Positions 1 through 6,036 of a DNA stretch of 6,036 nucleotides are shown in pieces. Where the stretch lies: positions 1-6,036 of the IMG/VR virus record IMGVR_UViG_3300028607_000568; one strand, given 5' to 3'. How positions within the stretch are numbered: position 1 is the stretch's first letter; each line of letters opens with the position of its first letter. The notes below the pieces were generated by a model, which did not search any database, was not told where the DNA came from, and saw nothing but the letters and a program-made list of their open reading frames with translations. The position numbers were made by a program, and so were the translations under genes.

Positions 1-459
1 GAAATTGGACATTTAATATTTGAAAATTCTCGTTGTAAGAAGTTAACGCTTACAGATATACAAGCGCATACAATTTTAGTGCGTGGAAATGCCAGCGATG
101 GTCAAAGTCTGGCCCCTTCACCGGGAACTGCGAGAATGAGGGCCATAGGTGGGGGTCACCAACAGGCTGACGCAATGGTCACATCGGGAGGTACATATGA
201 CCGTATTTGGATACAGGCTCCGACGAGTGGGGTTAACGGAAAAATAGGCACTTTAAGATTATCTAACTTATATACTAAAGGTGGTGACTGTGTGCTGTCA
301 AAAATAAATGTAGGAACTATGGAAATTCTTTTAAATGAAGTTGGAATGGGAAATGGGTTCTCCACTAAAGAATTTACAATCAGTACTACTGTTACGGGGG
401 CTAACATAACTGTCGAAGATAACGTGGAAGTAACGATAGCAGAACCAACAACTAGTTAG
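1..459 (+). CDS. C-terminal part of a beta-strand-rich hypothetical protein (possible beta-helix; possibly virion or surface protein); 5' truncated by the window
   Basis: Frame 1 is open from base 1 (EIGHLIFENSRCKKLTLTDIQAHTILVRGN...), so GTG79 is probably not the start. Ends with tandem stops TAG TAA (457-462). Repeated alternating-hydrophobic units: IGHLIFEN, IGTLRLSNL, VGTMEILLN. Confidence 0.75.
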   Translation, partial: EIGHLIFENSRCKKLTLTDIQAHTILVRGNASDGQSLAPSPGTARMRAIGGGHQQADAMVTSGGTYDRIWIQAPTSGVNGKIGTLRLSNLYTKGGDCVLSKINVGTMEILLNEVGMGNGFSTKEFTISTTVTGANITVEDNVEVTIAEPTTS

Positions 460-472
460 TAAAGGGGAGAGT

Positions 473-1048
473 ATGTTACGAGAGAAATTACCATGGTTTA
501 TTTTAGGTTTTCTTATAGCTTGTCTTATGGTTATTCCATACCATGTAAAAGTAATGGATGACTTTAATAATAAGTATAAAGAACAGTGTCTGATAGTAGA
601 TGTTGTAATATCTGATTCACGCGCAGGGTTACCCATATCTATGTCTGGTGAACAAATGATGTGTGGTTCTAATTGGACGAACTCATTCATATATTTCCCC
701 GGTTTTGACGAGCTAGAAAACCAAGCGTTTGGTTTAATAAGGAGGAGTAGAATGACCTATATAGTTACGTCTACTTGTGTAGATGTATTAGATACAGCGT
801 GTTTAGATGTTTGTCCAGTGGACTGCATTTACTTTGAGGAAGGTGTAGATCGAATGGTGTACATTGCTCCTGATGAATGTATCGACTGTGCGGCCTGTGA
901 ACCAGTTTGTCCAGTTAATTCAATCTTTGATGAAAGGGATGTCCCTAAAGCTGAAGAGGCATATATCCCTCTTAATTATGATTATTTTGAAAAGGATATA
1001 GATGAAGTACGAGCCAGACTAAATGAAATGGTTCCGATAGAAGAATGA
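473..1048 (+). CDS. N-terminally membrane-anchored 93-aa region fused in frame to a ferredoxin (long 191-aa form)
   Basis: SD-like AAGGGGAG at 462-469 precedes ATG473. Basic N-terminus MLREK is followed by hydrophobic LPWFILGFLIACLMVIPY. There is no stop before the ferredoxin Met at 752. Confidence 0.6.
   Translation: MLREKLPWFILGFLIACLMVIPYHVKVMDDFNNKYKEQCLIVDVVISDSRAGLPISMSGEQMMCGSNWTNSFIYFPGFDELENQAFGLIRRSRMTYIVTSTCVDVLDTACLDVCPVDCIYFEEGVDRMVYIAPDECIDCAACEPVCPVNSIFDERDVPKAEEAYIPLNYDYFEKDIDEVRARLNEMVPIEE
739..745 (+). promoter_or_regulatory. Strong Shine-Dalgarno site (AAGGAGG) inside ORF 473-1048, serving the ferredoxin start
   Basis: TAAGGAGGAGTAGAATG: consensus SD at normal spacing from ATG752. 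Confidence 0.85.
752..1048 (+). CDS. fdxA: 7Fe ([3Fe-4S][4Fe-4S]) dicluster ferredoxin, FdxA/Azotobacter FdI type, 98 aa
   Basis: MTYIVTSTC-x7-C-x3-CPVDCI ... PDECIDCAACEPVCP has the C9/C17/C21 and C43xxC46xxC49xxxC53P spacing of 7Fe ferredoxins. The family-typical MTY(V/I) N-terminus begins exactly at ATG752, 6 nt after AAGGAGG. Confidence 0.93.
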   Translation: MTYIVTSTCVDVLDTACLDVCPVDCIYFEEGVDRMVYIAPDECIDCAACEPVCPVNSIFDERDVPKAEEAYIPLNYDYFEKDIDEVRARLNEMVPIEE

Positions 1049-1131
1049 TACTTATAGCTATTATTGCGTTTATGATCTTATTTAGTTTATGGGTAGTTGT
1101 ACCAACATATTTACGAAGGGGGGATAAATGA
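1045..1131 (+). CDS. 28-aa single-pass membrane peptide (MILIAIIAFMILFSLWVVVPTYLRRGDK)
   Basis: Missing from the ORF track. It fills the gap exactly, with ATGA start/stop overlaps at both ends (1045-1048 and 1128-1131). About 19 hydrophobic residues are followed by a basic tail. Confidence 0.7.
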   Translation: MILIAIIAFMILFSLWVVVPTYLRRGDK

Positions 1132-1586
1132 AAAAAATACCGACATGGATTACAGCTATAGGTCATTGGTTTTTGCTTTTTGTTCAATTAAGATTTTTCC
1201 ATAATGATATTGTTGATAATACATTTATTAATGAGTCATTAGTTTTACCCAAAGGAATGAAAAGAATGACCTTAGATAATAAATATTGGGTATGTTCTAA
1301 AGAAACTTTTATGAAGTTAGTTAAATGGGTATGGGTAAGTAAAATGAAGTATGTTGGTGATCGTTATGATTGCGATAATTTTGCCTTTACGTTTAAAGCT
1401 TTGGTAGGATTAATATGGGGTTTGAATAATGTGGGGGTGGTTATTGACACTACCGGAGGTCATGCCTATAATATTATTATCTTTGATGATGGTTCATGGG
1501 AACTTTTTGAGCCACAATCAGGGCGTTTTGTTAAGCCGGGAGAACATAAAATGTATACATTTAAGAGAGGACAGGTGATTTTATAA
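1128..1586 (+). CDS. Putative papain/transglutaminase-like cysteine protease (resembles the Marasmius oreades agglutinin C-terminal domain)
   Basis: Motifs YDCDNFA (C82), GHAYN (H112) and FEPQ (E128) occur in the order of a Cys-His-Glu triad. G-rich SD at 1116-1124. Hydrophobic N-terminal stretch. Confidence 0.7.
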   Translation: MKKIPTWITAIGHWFLLFVQLRFFHNDIVDNTFINESLVLPKGMKRMTLDNKYWVCSKETFMKLVKWVWVSKMKYVGDRYDCDNFAFTFKALVGLIWGLNNVGVVIDTTGGHAYNIIIFDDGSWELFEPQSGRFVKPGEHKMYTFKRGQVIL

Positions 1587-1741
1587 TGTATGGAAGTGAT
1601 GAATGCGATTGTAGTGAACCAGCCAAGGGTTCAGAGGAAGAAGAATGTGTTTGTCTCGATTCAGGAATGTGTGAATGCACTGAGGAATTTTGTGAATGTA
1701 CTTTATGCGAGGGGGTAACAGATGACTACAACTACTCATAA
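1586..1741 (+). CDS. 51-aa acidic Cys-rich, metallothionein-like peptide
   Basis: Missing from the ORF track. MYGSDECDCSEPAKGSEEEECVCLDSGMCECTEEFCECTLCEGVTDDYNYS has 9 Cys (four CxC plus one), 16 D/E and 1 K. TAATG overlap with the upstream stop; SD AGGTGA at 1573-1578. Confidence 0.78.
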   Translation: MYGSDECDCSEPAKGSEEEECVCLDSGMCECTEEFCECTLCEGVTDDYNYS

Positions 1742-1961
1742 AATAATAGTTTATACTTCTATTGGTTGAGGCCCATGCATGGCAACCAAGTCTTGGTTGC
1801 GTAAGAGAGGTTATGAGTTTACTGAGTATAATATATCAGAGAATCAAGAATATGCAGATGAGTTACTTAAAAAGGGTTTTAGAGTAACTCCAGTAGTTAT
1901 GATAGGAGATACACCGATTGTTGGATATAGTCCAACGATGTTAGAAAAAGCATTGGCATAG
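1722..1961 (+). CDS. Glutaredoxin/NrdH-redoxin-like selenoprotein, 79 aa, UGPC active site (TGA 1767-1769 read as Sec)
   Basis: Reads MTTTTHKIIVYTSIG-(TGA)-GPCMATKSWLRKRGYEFTEYNISEN...GFRVTPVVMIGDTPIVGYSPTMLEKALA. The first beta strand (IIVYT), CxxC position, cis-Pro motif (TP) and IVG(Y/F) of the Grx fold are all present. SD GAGGGGGT at 1709-1716 precedes ATG1722. The ORF-track start at 1779 lacks the active site and has no convincing SD. Confidence 0.88.
1779..1802 (+). promoter_or_regulatory. Candidate bacterial-type SECIS hairpin
   Basis: GCAACCAA (1782-1789) pairs perfectly with TTGGTTGC (1793-1800) around the loop GTC, which starts with G and has 20 nt between it and the UGA. The stem can extend via U1780-G1801 and A1779-U1802 with G1781 bulged. 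Confidence 0.72.
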
Positions 1962-1970
1962 GAGAAGTGA

Positions 1971-2414
1971 ATGGTTATTGGAAATATGTTGAGAGACAGG
2001 GAAGTTCAGTATACAGCGGTACGAGATGAGACAACAAATACGTGGAGAATATTAGATACGTGGCATGATGCATTACGAAAATTAGACCCAGACGATGATA
2101 TACCTGATGATAATGAAGCGGTAAAAATTTTAACTGAGGGTGAATTTATTTCTTTGATGAAAGAAGCTGCACGGTTAGGAGTCTTGGCTAATGCAACATT
2201 CGGAACAGGAGAAGCGGAGCATGAAGCAACAATCTTAACTAAGGATCAAGAGATTCAACAGCTACATGAACAAATTTTAATGTTACAAGAAGAAAAATCA
2301 CAAGTGATTCAAGATGTATCACATTCCGAAGAATATGAATTGAAGGAAAGAGCGATGGATTCAATTCTAAAATTAGTATCCATGCAAGACATGACTAATT
2401 TAGGTAGGGATTAA
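1971..2414 (+). CDS. Hypothetical acidic protein with a C-terminal coiled coil, immediately upstream of the portal
   Basis: 147-aa ORF with SD AGGAG at 1960-1964. Heptad-like segment KDQEIQQLHEQILMLQEEKSQV. No family recognised. Confidence 0.8.
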   Translation: MVIGNMLRDREVQYTAVRDETTNTWRILDTWHDALRKLDPDDDIPDDNEAVKILTEGEFISLMKEAARLGVLANATFGTGEAEHEATILTKDQEIQQLHEQILMLQEEKSQVIQDVSHSEEYELKERAMDSILKLVSMQDMTNLGRD

Positions 2415-2417
2415 TAT

Positions 2418-4391
2418 ATGAAACTATCAGAATATTTACCAGATGTGCCAGTATTAGCACAACAAATGACTAGTTTGAATAATCAGATTGATCTGATGCA
2501 GTTGATGAAAGCAAGTGGGGGGGCAGAGACAGCTTCTGCGCCTATGATTGGATTAGATCATGTAGTTAATACATGGGTTCGCCATCAAATGGCATATAGG
2601 CAACAACTAGTACAAGATTTACAAACAATCTGTATGTCAGTACAGGAAATACGTTCCCCATTAAATCACATTACGTCGGAAGTATTTCGGAGAGGCTTGG
2701 TATGGGAAGCTAAGACTGATGATCCAGATACCGAAACAAAAGAAACGTTAGAAAAGTTCATGAAAAATTGTAATTCTTTCTCCCAAAGTTTGGAAGAAGT
2801 ACTAAGACAATTCCATTTTGATTTAAATTCAATTGATGATGCGTTCTTATATTTGGCTAAGGAGTATTATAGTGATGGTGAAACATTGCGCTCTAAAGTT
2901 AAAGAAATCAGACGGCTTAATCCAGCCTTGGTCGAGTTCGATCTTGATCAGGCTGGCTTACCTAAGAACTCGCATTTTATATGCCCACTCCATAGAGAAG
3001 AAGTCAATGAAGCACCGGGAGGTTGCCAAGACCCCGATTGCAAACGGGAATTGCAACCCGTTATGTACAAATACTACCATAGGAACCAGCATGTCTACTT
3101 GTTGGAACATGAAGTTATCCACGTTTCTAAGTTTTCCCCTTCGGAAACTTATGGTTGGAGTCCAATACTTACGGTTTTTGAAAAAGGATTAACGCTTATA
3201 GGAATGGATAAAAATCTTTATAGGTATTTCTTTGAACGAAAAATGCCTGCATCAATGATTATGGTCACTACAGATGATCCAGAAAGTCTTAGACGTGAAC
3301 GTGAACATATTGCTGCACAGACTAAGATTGATCCCAATTTTATTCCTATGGTTGCTGTATCAGCCCGTAGTCAACGAGGTCGCGTAGACCTTGTGCGTCT
3401 TTTTCATACATTACAAGAGATGGATTATCTTCCAGTTAGGGAAGAGATACGTGAACGAATTGCAGCTATGTGGGGAGTTACTCCCGCATGGCAAGGCGCA
3501 CCAGAAGCATTTGGGGGGCTTTCTACACAAACACAGCAATTAGTTGTAATGAGTCGAGTAGTCGAGTCTGATCAACGCCTTATACAACAGAAAATTATTC
3601 CTGCTATTTTAGAAGCTTTTGGTGTTGATGATTGGGACTTGAAGTTGCCAAATCCAGAGGAGAAGGCAGAGGCCACTAAGGTTAGTTTCTTACAGCAACG
3701 AGCGCAGATAATGCAAACGATGGCACAACTTGGTTTTATGTTTACATTAAAAGAAGAAGGGGTTGCTATGCAAGACGCTGAATTCGTTATTTCTGGTGAA
3801 ATGGTTCCGAATGCTCAAATGCAAGCGGAACAACAAGCTATGCAATTAGCCCAACAAGAACAGCAATTCAAGATGCAAGAACAACAACAGCAGATGCAAG
3901 AACAACAAATGGGAGCCGCTACTGGTGGTGGTGAAGAACTACCCGCTGGCCCTGAAGGTGGGGCCATCCAAGCAATGCTTAAAGCTGAAGGGAAATTTAA
4001 TGGGCGCACTGGTGGAAGAACTCCTGATTGGCAGGACAAAGCCCCGAACGAAGAACGGGACATTGATGAATATGCAGAAGCACGAGCGCATAAAGCAGAG
4101 AATAGAAATTGGGGTATTAAAGATATTGGAGGAGGTCATCCCATCAATAAGACATGGATGGGAGATTTAATGCAGAAAGGTTTTACGAGTCCTGTAATTA
4201 AAGAAGTAAATTCAGATGGGTCTAAACTTTGGTTTTTACAGAATGGCATAGACTTTGTTGCTGATTTAGGGCCAGCCGGTGTTTTAAGTATTGAGAAAGC
4301 AACCTTTTCAAATGCTATTCCGCAACATTCTAAGACTCCTATGGACACTACACCCTCTACAATAGATATAACTGATGAGGATGATAGTTAA
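2418..4391 (+). CDS. Phage portal protein, HK97-family-like, with a putative Zn-binding insertion and a long Q-rich C-terminal extension
   Basis: Portal-like motifs appear in the expected order: DLNSIDDAFLY; KEIRRLNPALV; EVIHVSKFSPSETYGWSPI; YFFERKMPASMI; EMDYLPVREEIRERIAAMWGVTP (compare D/E-M-x-F...IARAFGVPP); QQKIIPAIL. Confidence 0.85.
   Translation: MKLSEYLPDVPVLAQQMTSLNNQIDLMQLMKASGGAETASAPMIGLDHVVNTWVRHQMAYRQQLVQDLQTICMSVQEIRSPLNHITSEVFRRGLVWEAKTDDPDTETKETLEKFMKNCNSFSQSLEEVLRQFHFDLNSIDDAFLYLAKEYYSDGETLRSKVKEIRRLNPALVEFDLDQAGLPKNSHFICPLHREEVNEAPGGCQDPDCKRELQPVMYKYYHRNQHVYLLEHEVIHVSKFSPSETYGWSPILTVFEKGLTLIGMDKNLYRYFFERKMPASMIMVTTDDPESLRREREHIAAQTKIDPNFIPMVAVSARSQRGRVDLVRLFHTLQEMDYLPVREEIRERIAAMWGVTPAWQGAPEAFGGLSTQTQQLVVMSRVVESDQRLIQQKIIPAILEAFGVDDWDLKLPNPEEKAEATKVSFLQQRAQIMQTMAQLGFMFTLKEEGVAMQDAEFVISGEMVPNAQMQAEQQAMQLAQQEQQFKMQEQQQQMQEQQMGAATGGGEELPAGPEGGAIQAMLKAEGKFNGRTGGRTPDWQDKAPNEERDIDEYAEARAHKAENRNWGIKDIGGGHPINKTWMGDLMQKGFTSPVIKEVNSDGSKLWFLQNGIDFVADLGPAGVLSIEKATFSNAIPQHSKTPMDTTPSTIDITDEDDS
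3816..3911 (+). repeat. Gln-rich low-complexity coding tract with a 17-nt direct repeat at 21-nt period
   Basis: Encodes QMQAEQQAMQLAQQEQQFKMQEQQQQMQEQQM. AGATGCAAGAACAACAA occurs at 3871-3887 and 3892-3908. Confidence 0.85.
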
Positions 4392-6036
4392 TGCCCATCC
4401 GTCAAGCAAAAGGTAAATGGTATTGGGGAACTCAAGGGCCATTCGATTCTAAAAAGAAGGCTCAAGAGGTGGCTAGGGCCGCGCATTCATCTGGGTATAC
4501 TAAAAAATCATCGGATAAAGCAGCACCGGGAAGTAGACCCATGGAGAATCCTTCTTCCATTACAGCAGACGAATTGAATCGAAAATTGCGTAGAGCAACT
4601 AGAGGAGGTAAAGAATTAAAAGAAATACTTCTAAAATATGGGGTACAGGATTTTGGTAACTCACAAGAAGATGCATTAAAACGTGGGGCCAATCAACCTA
4701 AAGGGTGGAAACGCAACAATGCTAATGATGATGAAACTTCAATGGATAAATTTAGGACTTTCGTTAAATTTGACCAACAACGTAGTACCAATCATCCAGC
4801 TTATCCTAGTACTTTTCAAGGTAAATTAGGCGTGAAACGTATTGATTGGAGAAAAAAGAAAGACCCCAATTTTGAAAAACATACTCGTGTTGGAACACCA
4901 ACGGATTCTGTCTATCAAACGTCTATGGACACAGCCATTTTTATGAAAGAGTTGTGGCTCCAAAAGTTTATGGATATATCTAGACAACGTGTTATTGCGT
5001 ATATATTAAAGGAAGCTGAAGAAGAGGAACCGAAAGAAGAAAAACCTCCAAAAGGGGAAGAGCCTACAGAATTGGATGCGGATACTCCAACCGAAGAACC
5101 TACAGATAAACCTACTCCAGTCGTAGATAAACCTGTTACTGTAGCCGGGGCTTTACAGTGGGATACAGCTACGATGGGGCCAATGCCAGAGACTCGTATT
5201 GAAATCAATGATCCTGATGATGCTCCAAAAGGAACCCGTCTTATTGAAGGGCCACGGGAAGGACTCTATTATGATGGTGCTGCAAGTGATGGTGCGCAAA
5301 TTGAAGACCATATTTATTCAGATGAGTTTGATCGCCTTCGCAAACAAATACGTTGGGAAGCTGAACAACAATTAGAGGAAGGTGGGGTAGGGTCTTTAAG
5401 TGATGCTCACGAAACGTACAACAATATGGAAATATCCTATTCAAAATATATCCTAGATGAAATTAGTAAAATTAATCCAAATGTTGTTGATGAACATGAA
5501 GGACATTTAGTTCCGATAGATGTAGATGCTTTTACTGAAATTAATAAAAACGATCTTCGTCAACGCCCAGAGATGCAACGTCTCGCCCTAGACTATGCTG
5601 ATGCACATGATGCTTTAGTAGCTGCGAGAAAGCGTCTTGAGCCAATGCAAGCTGAAGCAATAAATGCTTTGTTAAAAGTTTTTGGTCAGTTGTCCCAACC
5701 ACAAATTGGAAGTCCGGATATTGATAAAGACTCTTCTTATGAAGTAGGTATATCTCCTGATGTTACACTAATGGTAGATAATGATGGATTATATGGTCAC
5801 TGGTTAGAAACTATGCACAAACGGCAAACCATACTTAAATTCTTAGATGAGGTAAATGTTAATGCCACAAATAATTTATCTCCTGAGCAACAGATCGAAA
5901 TGCGGAAACGGGTTATTAATACTGAAATGATTGCTATTAGGGGCAAAAATACCGGGGCATCTTATTTAGGTAAAAAAGGGGGGGATATTCAAAACCGTCT
6001 ATTTGGCGGTTCTGATTTTAGAAACAATACTGTTTT
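4391..6036 (+). CDS. Large modular hypothetical protein (at least 548 aa, 3' truncated), probably head-associated
   Basis: Missing from the ORF track because it has no stop in the window. TAATG overlap with the portal stop; SD GAGG at 4377-4380. My manual translation (MPIRQAKGKWYWGTQGPFDSKKKAQEVARAAHSSGY...GGSDFRNNTV) found no in-frame stop. Basic N-terminal part, E/P/T-rich linker, then an acidic helical region. Confidence 0.85.
   Translation, partial: MPIRQAKGKWYWGTQGPFDSKKKAQEVARAAHSSGYTKKSSDKAAPGSRPMENPSSITADELNRKLRRATRGGKELKEILLKYGVQDFGNSQEDALKRGANQPKGWKRNNANDDETSMDKFRTFVKFDQQRSTNHPAYPSTFQGKLGVKRIDWRKKKDPNFEKHTRVGTPTDSVYQTSMDTAIFMKELWLQKFMDISRQRVIAYILKEAEEEEPKEEKPPKGEEPTELDADTPTEEPTDKPTPVVDKPVTVAGALQWDTATMGPMPETRIEINDPDDAPKGTRLIEGPREGLYYDGAASDGAQIEDHIYSDEFDRLRKQIRWEAEQQLEEGGVGSLSDAHETYNNMEISYSKYILDEISKINPNVVDEHEGHLVPIDVDAFTEINKNDLRQRPEMQRLALDYADAHDALVAARKRLEPMQAEAINALLKVFGQLSQPQIGSPDIDKDSSYEVGISPDVTLMVDNDGLYGHWLETMHKRQTILKFLDEVNVNATNNLSPEQQIEMRKRVINTEMIAIRGKNTGASYLGKKGGDIQNRLFGGSDFRNNTV

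Follow-up and report, generated by a model that had tools for sequence, protein, structure and literature searches.

The DNA analyzed here, referred to as the window, is a stretch of 6,036 nucleotides from an uncultured virus (IMG/VR record IMGVR_UViG_3300028607_000568, positions 1 to 6,036). Within it, a small redoxin gene interrupted by an in-frame TGA was found upstream of a gene encoding the portal protein. The features of the locus, all on the plus strand, are as follows.

1..459 (+), C-terminal end of the homologue of the 497-aa protein that follows NrdJ in relatives (tblastn, 57% identity; the match covers bases 1-456)
752..1048 (+), FdxA-like 4Fe-4S ferredoxin, being the in-frame C-terminal part of ORF 473-1048 (Pfam Fer4 families; PHROG ferredoxin; NCBIfam FdxA_Actino at 105 bits, below the cutoff of 125)
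1709..1715 (+), Shine-Dalgarno-like GAGGGGG, 6 nt upstream of ATG1722
1722..1961 (+), full redoxin ORF of 79 codons including the TGA at codon 16 and ending at TAG 1959-1961; the predicted product is an NrdH/glutaredoxin-like selenoprotein
1722..1766 (+), N-terminal 15 codons, the inferred first beta-strand, (K)IIVYTSIG
1767..1769 (+), in-frame TGA, the proposed selenocysteine (Sec) codon, at the position of the attacking Cys
1767..1778 (+), redox motif U-G-P-C
1779..1961 (+), 60-aa fragment reported by gene callers, read here as an annotation artefact and not as a separate gene
1782..1800 (+), bSECIS-like hairpin with 5' arm GCAACCAA (1782-1789), loop GUC (1790-1792) and 3' arm UUGGUUGC (1793-1800), 20 nt after the UGA
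1971..2414 (+), conserved 147-aa protein (p147) of unknown function between the redoxin and the portal gene, syntenic in about 40 loci and without a family hit
2418..4391 (+), portal protein (phrog_18178 portal, E 3e-41; the Pfam Phage_portal match is weak)

Window 1722-1961 translates as MTTTTHKIIVYTSIG, an internal stop and then GPCMATKSW...KALA to the terminal stop. An in-frame TAA at 1716-1718 makes ATG1722 the first possible start. The piece following the TGA (1770-1958) matched the Pfam Glutaredoxin family PF00462 at 39.2 bits, above the gathering threshold of 22.9, and covered profile positions 11-58 of 60. It also aligned to Escherichia coli NrdH (PDB 1H75) with the Cys of the window matching chain residue 14, which places the TGA three residues earlier, at chain residue 11; residues 11 and 14 form the CVQC active site of this protein. 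No structure was predicted, and sequence matches to solved NrdH and Grx structures were used instead. A preliminary description of this DNA, made from the sequence alone, had claimed that a Shine-Dalgarno sequence and ATG1722 lead in frame to a TGA at codon 16, exactly where the attacking Cys of the Grx CxxC motif belongs, and this observation proved to be correct. Its accompanying claims also held: TGA ends both ORF 473-1048 and the 28-codon ORF 1045-1131 with ATGA overlaps, Trp is encoded by TGG throughout, and gene callers truncate the redoxin gene, with 23 of 24 database clusters being fragments of 54-61 aa.

The occurrence of the TGA is far beyond chance. It was found at the same codon in 24 distinct versions of the window's own clade and in 53 of 58 IMG/VR stretches recovered with a DNA pattern; these 53 related viral contigs all keep it, and they comprise 37 distinct versions of the UGA plus 45 nt across subfamilies of 35-47% GC. 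The same TGA is carried by three cellular homologues (loci L026, L057, and L058), one cellular homologue being in a Dehalococcoidia MAG. The reading frame is conserved on both sides of the TGA in all relatives. Upstream, an I-x-V-[FY]-T-S-x-G motif is maintained with synonymous variation (for example, Ser as TCT/TCA/TCG/AGT) and is colinear with Cys homologues such as IIYTSNG-C and KIYTSIG-C. Decay of the allele had been named beforehand as an observation that would count against a selenoprotein, and none was seen; there are no frameshifts or further stops, and both halves of the gene show purifying selection. A pseudogene, or a sequencing or assembly error at 1767-1769, is thus contradicted by the comparative data; although a single window cannot exclude an error on its own and no raw reads were examined, the same TGA appears in dozens of independent contigs from many samples with diverged flanks, and this possibility is considered remote.

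The preliminary description had also proposed, as a test, that TGA and TGY should alternate at this codon among related phages, and this was observed. Among 80 relatives of the portal gene, the site upstream of the p147 and portal genes holds a TGA form in 20 loci, a TGT/TGC form in six, and no redoxin in 43. GPC is invariant in the Sec forms, while the Cys forms read C-[AS]-P-C. In the wider family, 62 of the top 150 representatives are truncated just after the xxC and 65 are full-length CxxC proteins. Cys homologues at two further loci, L047 and L048 (48% identity), turned out to be cellular; they lie next to a class Ic Glu/Gln-tRNA synthetase and CofD, and share no genes with the phages. 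Another sequence, P0009 (motif CIHC), first appeared to be a phage Cys ortholog, but its 1.2-kb contig is 93% identical to the related locus L004 only from codon 27 onwards and carries a LysE gene at 32% GC upstream; it is a recombinant or an assembly chimera and was not used as evidence. Alternation of Sec and Cys at one position is the recognized signature used to find selenoproteins (PMC13188914).

A feature not listed in the preliminary description is a hairpin just after the UGA that meets the published bacterial SECIS model (PMC13188914, Fig. 2). That model requires a loop of 3-9 nt, an upper stem of 4-16 bp, G in the first two loop positions, 16-37 nt between the UGA and the loop, and a minimum free energy at or below -7.5 kcal/mol; the window has an 8-bp stem, the loop GUC, 20-nt spacing and -10.6 kcal/mol. 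All 37 versions have a hairpin of fitting geometry, and 29 of 37 satisfy the energy criterion over 48 nt while eight miss it. Taken alone, the hairpin of the window is not exceptional against dinucleotide shuffles (z = -1.73; 9 of 200 shuffles fold as well). However, in 35 of 37 versions 5% or fewer of 300 synonymous recodings fold as well, and the stem is held by rare codons: Thr is ACC in 23/24 and Lys is AAG in 24/24 versions of the window's clade, against genome usage of 9.6% and 30%. Pair 17-33 is C-G in 13 and U-A in 12; overall, 88% of cells are paired, against 9-47% when partners are slid, and no shuffle of 500 reached the observed covariation score. Most stem pairs are invariant and so say nothing about structure, and the covariation rests mainly on this one well-populated compensatory pair and a few cells of pair 16-34, in sequences that are related to each other. 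A second subfamily builds a different hairpin in another register, using other codons for K-x-W-L. The Cys orthologs provide a natural control, as they encode the same MATKSWL peptide with ACG/ACU AAA and lack such a hairpin. A scan of the window with Rfam returned no SECIS or other credible RNA family even at E <= 10; one paper notes that bacterial SECIS elements are poorly covered by those models. A lower stem pairing the GGNCC after the UGA with a downstream GG-rich codon appeared in many single folds, but its register is not conserved and it is not kept by RNAalifold; hence, it is not claimed.

These data bear on three other readings of the interrupted frame. The first is that the UGA mostly terminates and that a small fraction is read through by a near-cognate tRNA (Trp or Cys) without SelB, with the hairpin acting only as a read-through stimulator or as a translational attenuator of redoxin dosage. 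UGA is the leakiest stop codon in bacteria, the Sec machinery of the host is unverified, and the hairpin is short and, in the eight versions noted above, weaker than the SECIS energy criterion. Nevertheless, Trp at the attacking position would give an inactive redoxin, the UGA sits exactly at the catalytic Cys in a slot that alternates only with Cys codons, and the geometry of the hairpin and its loop G fit the SECIS model. In addition, cellular homologues sit beside a second gene that has TGA at its redox Cys positions, which points to real Sec usage in that family, and this first reading is considered unlikely. The second, that a 15-residue leader peptide ends at the UGA and the 60-aa fragment is translated independently from ATG1779, could draw on the GAGG at 1768-1771 (within the UGAGG sequence), 7 nt before this ATG, as a ribosome-binding site, and on the choice of this ORF by gene callers. 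The in-frame ATG, however, is absent in relatives that read GPCLATK and GPCTATK and shifts by one codon in the GPCAMTK forms; the fragment would lack both the first beta-strand and the attacking residue, and the upstream 15 codons are conserved as protein. It is regarded as very unlikely. The third, an alternative genetic code in which TGA is read as Trp (code 4) or Gly (code 25) to give G-W-GPC or G-G-GPC, is suggested by four database entries of this family that were called with W at this position (P0032, P0047, P0051, and P0067), but it is already contradicted and highly improbable. TGA ends 13 of 123 long ORFs across related loci and is absent from the interior of every other long gene, including proteins of 1373-2071 aa called under code 11, whereas a recoded genome would scatter TGA through its genes; the same TGA also occurs in cellular contigs of 58-60% GC that hold long ORFs called under code 11. 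A scan of the phage loci for further in-frame TGA genes with nearby Cys gave only off-frame and antisense noise.

A search of the contig and host for sel and nrd genes had likewise been proposed in advance. Class II NrdJ (TIGR02504, 668 bits against a cutoff of 400) lies two genes upstream of the redoxin in relatives, where the redoxin gene is situated between the NrdJ and portal genes, and NrdJ is also adjacent in a second phage lineage that lacks the portal and p147 homologues; NrdJ is not inside the 6-kb window itself. Scans of the window and about 60 related loci for tRNA-Sec found none, the only tRNA being tRNA-Asp in the cellular loci L047 and L048, and no SelA/B/D domain appeared among the called genes of an 82.7-kb relative, which also has no tRNA. 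Sec insertion would thus depend on the host, which was not identified, so that the presence of selA, selB, selC and selD in it was not checked, and the Sec genes of the cellular relatives carrying the same TGA were not searched. The best cultured relatives of the portal are tailed viruses of Haloarcula at about 28% identity, which briefly suggested an archaeal virus, but this was rejected because the 82.7-kb relative encodes DnaB, DnaG, PolA, RecA, RuvC and a sigma-70-type factor. The 497-aa neighbor has no match in GenBank phages, PolA is 28% identical or less to phages of Gram-positive hosts, and the closest cultured viruses are only 25-30% identical. A Cys-rich peptide at 1586-1741 was examined as a possible relative of ferredoxin-thioredoxin reductase (FTR), given its CxC spacing and the FTR neighbor in cells, but there was no Pfam hit even at E <= 5, and this relationship remains a speculation.

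With regard to family, the protein is nearer to the NrdH/YruB-like small redoxins than to classical glutathione-dependent Grx, which refines the earlier assignment, yet it falls below the NCBI cutoffs for both. The window piece scored 50.8 bits against NrdH-redoxin (TIGR02194; cutoff 85.75) and 47.6 bits against the YruB family (TIGR02196; cutoff 88.55); the full-length Cys orthologs at loci L138 and L186 gave 49.7 and 50.9 bits, and 49.8 and 55.9 bits, respectively. These are nonetheless the best family and structure matches (nearest structures 7C10 and 3ZIJ), with a length of 75-80 aa and a C-terminal V-G-[YF]-S-P that aligns with the S-G-F-R-P of NrdH. The NrdH family is characterized by a CVQC active site and a WSGFRP motif; the window reads U-G-P-C, which is thioredoxin-like, and I-V-G-Y-S-P, and the motif across Sec and Cys forms is U/C-[GAS]-P-C. 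NrdH is a dedicated reductant of ribonucleotide reductase (RNR), which matches the RNR neighborhood here, but it classically serves class Ib NrdEF, whereas the partner here would be a class II NrdJ. Matches to the UXX-star glutaredoxin-like (seleno)proteins curated by NCBI (NF041212 and its subfamilies) were weak, at 35-37 bits (34.9 for the window piece against NF041212) and below the cutoff of 66; that family name indicates Sec three residues from the C-terminus, while here Sec would be at residue 16 of 79.

Bacterial selenoprotein glutaredoxins of the UxxC type (PF00462), as in Clostridium/Alkaliphilus oremlandii OhILAs, Geobacter sulfurreducens and Moorella, are an experimentally verified family (PMC13188914; PMC1794560, Table 1). 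They are likewise small thioredoxin-fold redoxins in which Sec replaces the N-terminal attacking Cys of CxxC, the UGA is followed directly by an in-ORF bSECIS, and Cys homologues exist; the gene described here differs in being carried by phages rather than cells, in its nearness to NrdH/YruB-like redoxins, in its UGPC motif, and in its linkage to a viral NrdJ. Cys-type glutaredoxin/NrdH-like genes of cultured phages (Enterococcus, Arthrobacter, Gordonia and other phages) have the same fold and size and are common in phage nucleotide-metabolism modules; 169 GenBank phage records matched at 44% identity or less, all listed hits are annotated as ordinary proteins, and the one read through, from Enterococcus phage RioGrande, uses Cys (VYTKNN-CMPC), with no UGA and no SECIS. 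Exploitation of host Sec insertion by a virus is known from the glutathione peroxidase of molluscum contagiosum virus and fowlpox virus (PMC6769590; PMC1802603), but those are eukaryotic viruses with eukaryotic-type SECIS elements. tRNA-Sec genes have been predicted in huge phages, and it has been speculated that such phages might encode selenoproteins (PMC10747093), although no selenoprotein gene was named; here the gene and its bacterial-type SECIS are identified, and the phage carries no tRNA. No report of a phage selenoprotein was found.

Taken together, the preferred explanation, held with fairly high confidence, is that window 1722-1961 is a single gene for a 79-residue NrdH/glutaredoxin-like thiol-selenol oxidoreductase with Sec as its attacking active-site residue (U16). 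In this view, the ribosome reaches UGA 1767-1769, the hairpin within the coding sequence recruits the SelB of the host carrying Sec-tRNA(Sec), and Sec is inserted instead of termination. Recognition of the SECIS by SelB is species-specific. The phage would supply only the UGA and the SECIS; tRNA(Sec), SelA, SelB and SelD would come from the host, such that the amount of full-length protein would depend on host selenium status, and without Sec insertion only a 15-residue peptide would be made. The most likely function of the redoxin is to re-reduce the phage's own class II, B12-dependent NrdJ during DNA replication, a role that rests on gene neighborhood and on what is known of the NrdH family. 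The comparative data themselves establish the conserved UGA, the Sec/Cys alternation in one syntenic slot, the selected hairpin, the absence of Sec machinery in the contig of a relative, and the NrdJ linkage; Sec insertion itself, for which no selenium labelling or mass spectrometry exists, the electron acceptor, the upstream reductant and the identity of the host are inferences. The interpretation offered in the preliminary description, that a phage borrows host Sec insertion to make a redoxin whose production depends on selenium, is supported, the in silico tests it proposed having come out in its favor.

A broader reading is also considered likely: that a widespread lineage of uncultured marine phages (more than 400 portal relatives in IMG/VR, with at least 53 contigs carrying this gene), plus at least one further phage lineage, encode a genuine selenoprotein, a U-G-P-C redoxin placed beside the viral B12-dependent ribonucleotide reductase and translated by hijacking host SelB and tRNA-Sec through a phage-borne bacterial SECIS. 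As far as could be found, this would be the first selenoprotein family of bacteriophages. It would make phage DNA synthesis in part of the ocean depend on two trace nutrients, selenium and cobalt, and would restrict productive expression to Sec-competent hosts; one candidate host group is the Dehalococcoidia/SAR202-like bacteria, whose chromosomes carry the nearest cellular Sec homologues. Selenocysteine decoding is treated as a cellular trait; the 2026 review of the prokaryotic selenoproteome does not mention phages or viruses, and a global ocean survey found few or no viral sequences in selenoprotein families. If confirmed, a conserved phage selenoprotein would reveal a systematic annotation gap, as nearly every database copy is a 60-aa fragment or a mistranslation with W at the Sec position. 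It would also mean that phages can carry the cis-element needed to recruit a host-specific recoding machine, and this element would become a new kind of host-range determinant and host-prediction marker. Matched Sec and Cys versions of one viral enzyme in one genomic slot would allow a direct test of what Sec buys a redoxin, and selenium availability would join cobalt as a trace nutrient linked to viral nucleotide synthesis in the sea.

Translation of window 1722-1961 gives MTTTTHKIIVYTSIG*GPCMATKSWLRKRGYEFTEYNISENQEYADELLKKGFRVTPVVMIGDTPIVGYSPTMLEKALA*, in which the internal stop is the TGA at 1767-1769. A GAGGGGG run at 1709-1715 lies 6 nt before ATG1722, and an in-frame TAA at 1716-1718 makes that ATG the first possible start. 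The 63 residues that follow the TGA match the Pfam Glutaredoxin profile at 39.2 bits (cutoff 22.9) from profile position 11 onward, and they align to E. coli NrdH (PDB 1H75) with the Cys of the window on chain residue 14; the TGA therefore falls on chain residue 11. Residues 11 and 14 of NrdH form its CVQC active site. TGA is used as a stop at 1046-1048 and 1129-1131, as had been claimed, and the observation made in the preliminary description, an open frame from ATG1722 interrupted by a TGA where the attacking Cys belongs, is confirmed as it was written.

That this TGA is not an error was first indicated by a protein search with the C-terminal piece, which returned 24 clusters; 23 of these are fragments of 54-61 aa that begin just after the xxC, the pattern expected if gene callers stop at a conserved TGA. 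Inspection of the DNA confirmed it. All 20 loci from IMG/VR have TGA at this codon, in 16 distinct local versions, and the upstream frame is conserved as M..I.V[FY]TS.G. A scan of metagenomes added more loci, and every close relative again had TGA. The upstream codons vary synonymously, with Ser, for example, encoded by TCT, TCA, TCG or AGT, and hence the 15 codons before the TGA are translated in the same frame as the rest. A DNA pattern built on [FY]-T-S-x-G-TGA-G-P-C found 58 stretches in IMG/VR, of which 53 are this gene; they fall into several subfamilies, from genomes of 35-47% GC. The immediate context, GGU-UGA-GGC, is also under synonymous constraint, for a reason that was not established: the codon before the UGA (window 1764-1772 spans the three codons) is GGT in 24 of 24 versions, and the codon after it is the rare GGC in 17 of 24, against 9% genome usage.

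This is not a different genetic code. In the related loci, TGA ends 13 of 123 long ORFs, and genes of 1373, 1477 and 2071 codons are called under the standard bacterial code. A scan for other TGA-bridged ORFs with a nearby Cys found only off-frame and antisense noise. The recoding is specific to this one codon.

Alternation of TGA with TGY at this codon among related phages had been proposed in advance as a test of the selenoprotein reading, and it was examined in 80 of the 407 IMG/VR relatives of the portal protein of the window by inspection of the region upstream of each. Both forms were found in the same syntenic slot, and thus TGA and TGY do alternate among related phages.

State of the redoxin slot upstream of the portal gene in the 80 loci examined
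TGA form: 20 loci
TGT or TGC form (loci L138-140, CAPC; L175/176, CSPC; L186, CAPC): 6 loci
No redoxin: 43 loci
Too little upstream sequence: 11 loci

In the wider family, a full HMMER scan gave 440 hits at E <= 0.001. Among the top 150 representatives, 62 are truncated right after the xxC and 65 are full-length CxxC proteins. Four others, the database proteins P0032, P0047, P0051 and P0067, carry W at the Sec position (for example ...YTSNGWGPC...); these look like gene calls made under genetic code 4 on short contigs, a second kind of misannotation besides truncation. The only full-length 'Cys form' in the first protein search, P0009 (contig L059, 652-879), is 93% identical to phage L004 from codon 27 onward but is unrelated before that point, with a LysE gene upstream at 32% GC; it is either a recombinant that replaced exactly the UGA-plus-SECIS module, or an assembly chimera.

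Twelve nucleotides after the UGA lies the hairpin GCAACCAA-GUC-UUGGUUGC (1782-1800), with a fold energy of -10.6 kcal/mol. The published bacterial SECIS model asks for a loop of 3-9 nt, a stem of 4-16 bp, a G in the first two loop positions, 16-37 nt between UGA and loop, and an MFE at or below -7.5 kcal/mol (PMC13188914), and the window, with a GUC loop, 8 bp and 20 nt, satisfies it. On its own, this hairpin is only mildly unusual (z = -1.73, with 9 of 200 shuffles folding as well); it is the comparative evidence that counts. Weak points are that 8 of 37 distinct versions miss the energy criterion over 48 nt and that no Rfam SECIS model matches. Rare codons are fixed in the stem: Thr is ACC in 23 of 24 versions and Lys is AAG in 24 of 24, whereas these genomes use ACC for 9.6% of Thr and AAG for 30% of Lys, and other Thr and Lys columns of the same gene follow the genome bias. 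With 28 distinct sequences of this hairpin type, 88% of cells pair, against 9-47% when the partners are slid; pair 17-33 is C-G in 13 and U-A in 12, and none of 500 shuffles reaches the observed covariation score. All 37 distinct versions have a hairpin that fits the geometry of the model, and in 35 of them, 5% or fewer of 300 synonymous recodings give one as stable (median 1%).

A second subfamily encodes K-[AG]-[WY]-L with AAA...CUU and forms a different hairpin one codon further on, either GAAAGC-GUG-GCUUUC or GUGAAAG-GGUAU-CUUUCAC; what is preserved is the structure, not the sequence. The Cys orthologs encode the identical MATKSWL as GCU ACG AAA UCU UGG UUA, or GCU ACU AAA UCG UGG CUA, and have no such hairpin.

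The best family matches of the protein are NrdH (TIGR02194, 50.8 bits) and the YruB family (TIGR02196, 47.6 bits). Full-length Cys orthologs also score only about 50 bits, below the respective cutoffs of 85.75 and 88.55, and this is therefore a distinct clade of small NrdH/YruB-like redoxins, not a member of either curated family. Its active site, UGPC, is thioredoxin-like. Cultured phages carry only Cys-type relatives at 44% identity or less.

The window, IMG/VR contig 3300028607_000568, carries a portal gene (phrog_18178, E 3e-41). The only relatives of this portal among 50,697 GenBank phage records are tailed haloarchaeal viruses (HVTV-1, HCTV-5 and others) at 27-30% identity, the nearest at 28%, and the lineage has no close cultured relative. 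An 82,756-bp contig of a relative, read in separate pieces that were not joined, nonetheless encodes DnaB, DnaG, PolA, RecA, RuvC, a sigma-70-type factor, a tail tube protein, an S74 fibre and an SU10-like capsid protein; its replication genes are bacterial in type, and this is a tailed bacteriophage. The local gene order in relatives is TerL, NrdJ, a 93-aa gene, a 497-aa gene, optional inserts, the Sec redoxin, a 147-aa gene (p147) and then the portal. NrdJ, the class II B12-dependent RNR, scores 668 bits on TIGR02504. In locus L025 (4439-10168) and syntenic loci, the class II RNR gene and the redoxin sit inside the packaging/head module, between the terminase large subunit (phrog_38, E 1.8e-26) and the portal gene, which is an unusual place for nucleotide-metabolism genes. 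The neighboring features within the window are as follows.

1-456: end of the homologue of the 497-aa protein
473-1048 (+): one open frame joining an N-terminal membrane-like segment to an FdxA-like 4Fe-4S ferredoxin, the latter with its own AGGAGG and ATG at 752
1045-1131 (+): a 28-codon hydrophobic micro-ORF (MILIAIIAFMILFSLWVVVPTYLRRGDK) with ATGA start/stop overlaps at both ends
1128-1586 (+): a 152-aa protein with an N-terminal hydrophobic segment
1586-1741 (+): a 51-aa acidic, Cys-rich peptide directly upstream of the redoxin gene, which it overlaps by 20 nt
2418-4391: the portal gene

The ferredoxin, the 152-aa protein and the Cys-rich peptide are the optional inserts. The ferredoxin part, which lies between the 497-aa gene and the redoxin, is 95-100% identical in six other contigs (L074, L091, L097, L099, L111 and L113). 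The micro-ORF is below the length threshold of the ORF list and was read directly from the sequence. The 152-aa protein matches Pfam Lectin_C_term (PF18022, 40.7 bits) and Agglutinin_C (PF18021, 27.5 bits), both above threshold, and has no PHROG or NCBIfam hit; this is an unexpected domain in this module. The Cys-rich peptide has the pattern CxC-x13-CxC-x5-CxC-x4-CxC-x2-C and no Pfam or PHROG hit even at lenient thresholds, while homologues at 67-74% identity occur in the loci L003, L073, L078, L093 and L099. Its CxC spacing loosely recalls the Fe-S/disulfide site of ferredoxin-thioredoxin reductase, but this is unsupported. A second phage lineage, without these portal or p147 genes, also has NrdJ 1.2-1.5 kb upstream of its Sec redoxin, and this repeated linkage supports a role as reductant of the viral RNR.

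No locus contains a tRNA gene, and no called gene of the 82.7-kb contig has SelA, SelB or SelD domains; the phage brings only the UGA and the SECIS. Cellular homologues with the same TGA exist. One, L026, lies in an 805-kb contig of a Dehalococcoidia MAG, next to ftsY. Two others, L057 and L058 (58-59% GC), lie next to rpoB and rpoC and read VYTSIG-TGA-GPCHMVKVYL. In the latter two, the gene just upstream of the redoxin (9481-9740 in L057, and at the same place in L058) is a homologue of the ferredoxin-thioredoxin reductase (FTR) catalytic subunit (PF02943, E 3.7e-9), with two in-frame TGAs where the family has the second Cys of its CPC and CHC motifs; it reads CP-TGA and CI-TGA, and so it may be a double-Sec FTR paired with a Sec redoxin. 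A ferredoxin beside the redoxin in the window, together with this FTR neighbor in cells, raises the possibility of a ferredoxin-driven reduction route. The hairpin of phages L076 and L090 is nearly the same as the cellular one, which hints at gene exchange with Dehalococcoidia-like bacteria and names them as one candidate host group. This is inference only. The host is unknown, and the phages of the window have 38-40% GC while those cells have about 60%.

Sec-containing Grx and Trx are known in bacteria (PMC1794560; PMC13188914). Full-text searches of a literature collection found no described phage selenoprotein, although the collection is not exhaustive and prior reports elsewhere cannot be excluded. 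The 2026 review never mentions phages or viruses (PMC13188914), a GOS survey reports few or no viral sequences in selenoprotein families (PMC9402790), and one paper predicts tRNA-Sec genes in huge phages and only speculates about selenoproteins (PMC10747093).

The interpretation offered in the preliminary description, that a phage borrows host Sec insertion to make a redoxin, likewise stands. The conserved UGA, its alternation with Cys codons and the selected hairpin were shown here, whereas incorporation of selenium, the Sec competence of the host and the function as RNR reductant remain unproven. By every accepted computational criterion this is a selenoprotein gene. A bacterial UxxC redoxin with a bSECIS is of a type already described; here it is carried by phages, and the gene belongs to a sizeable family of phage genes that annotation pipelines truncate.
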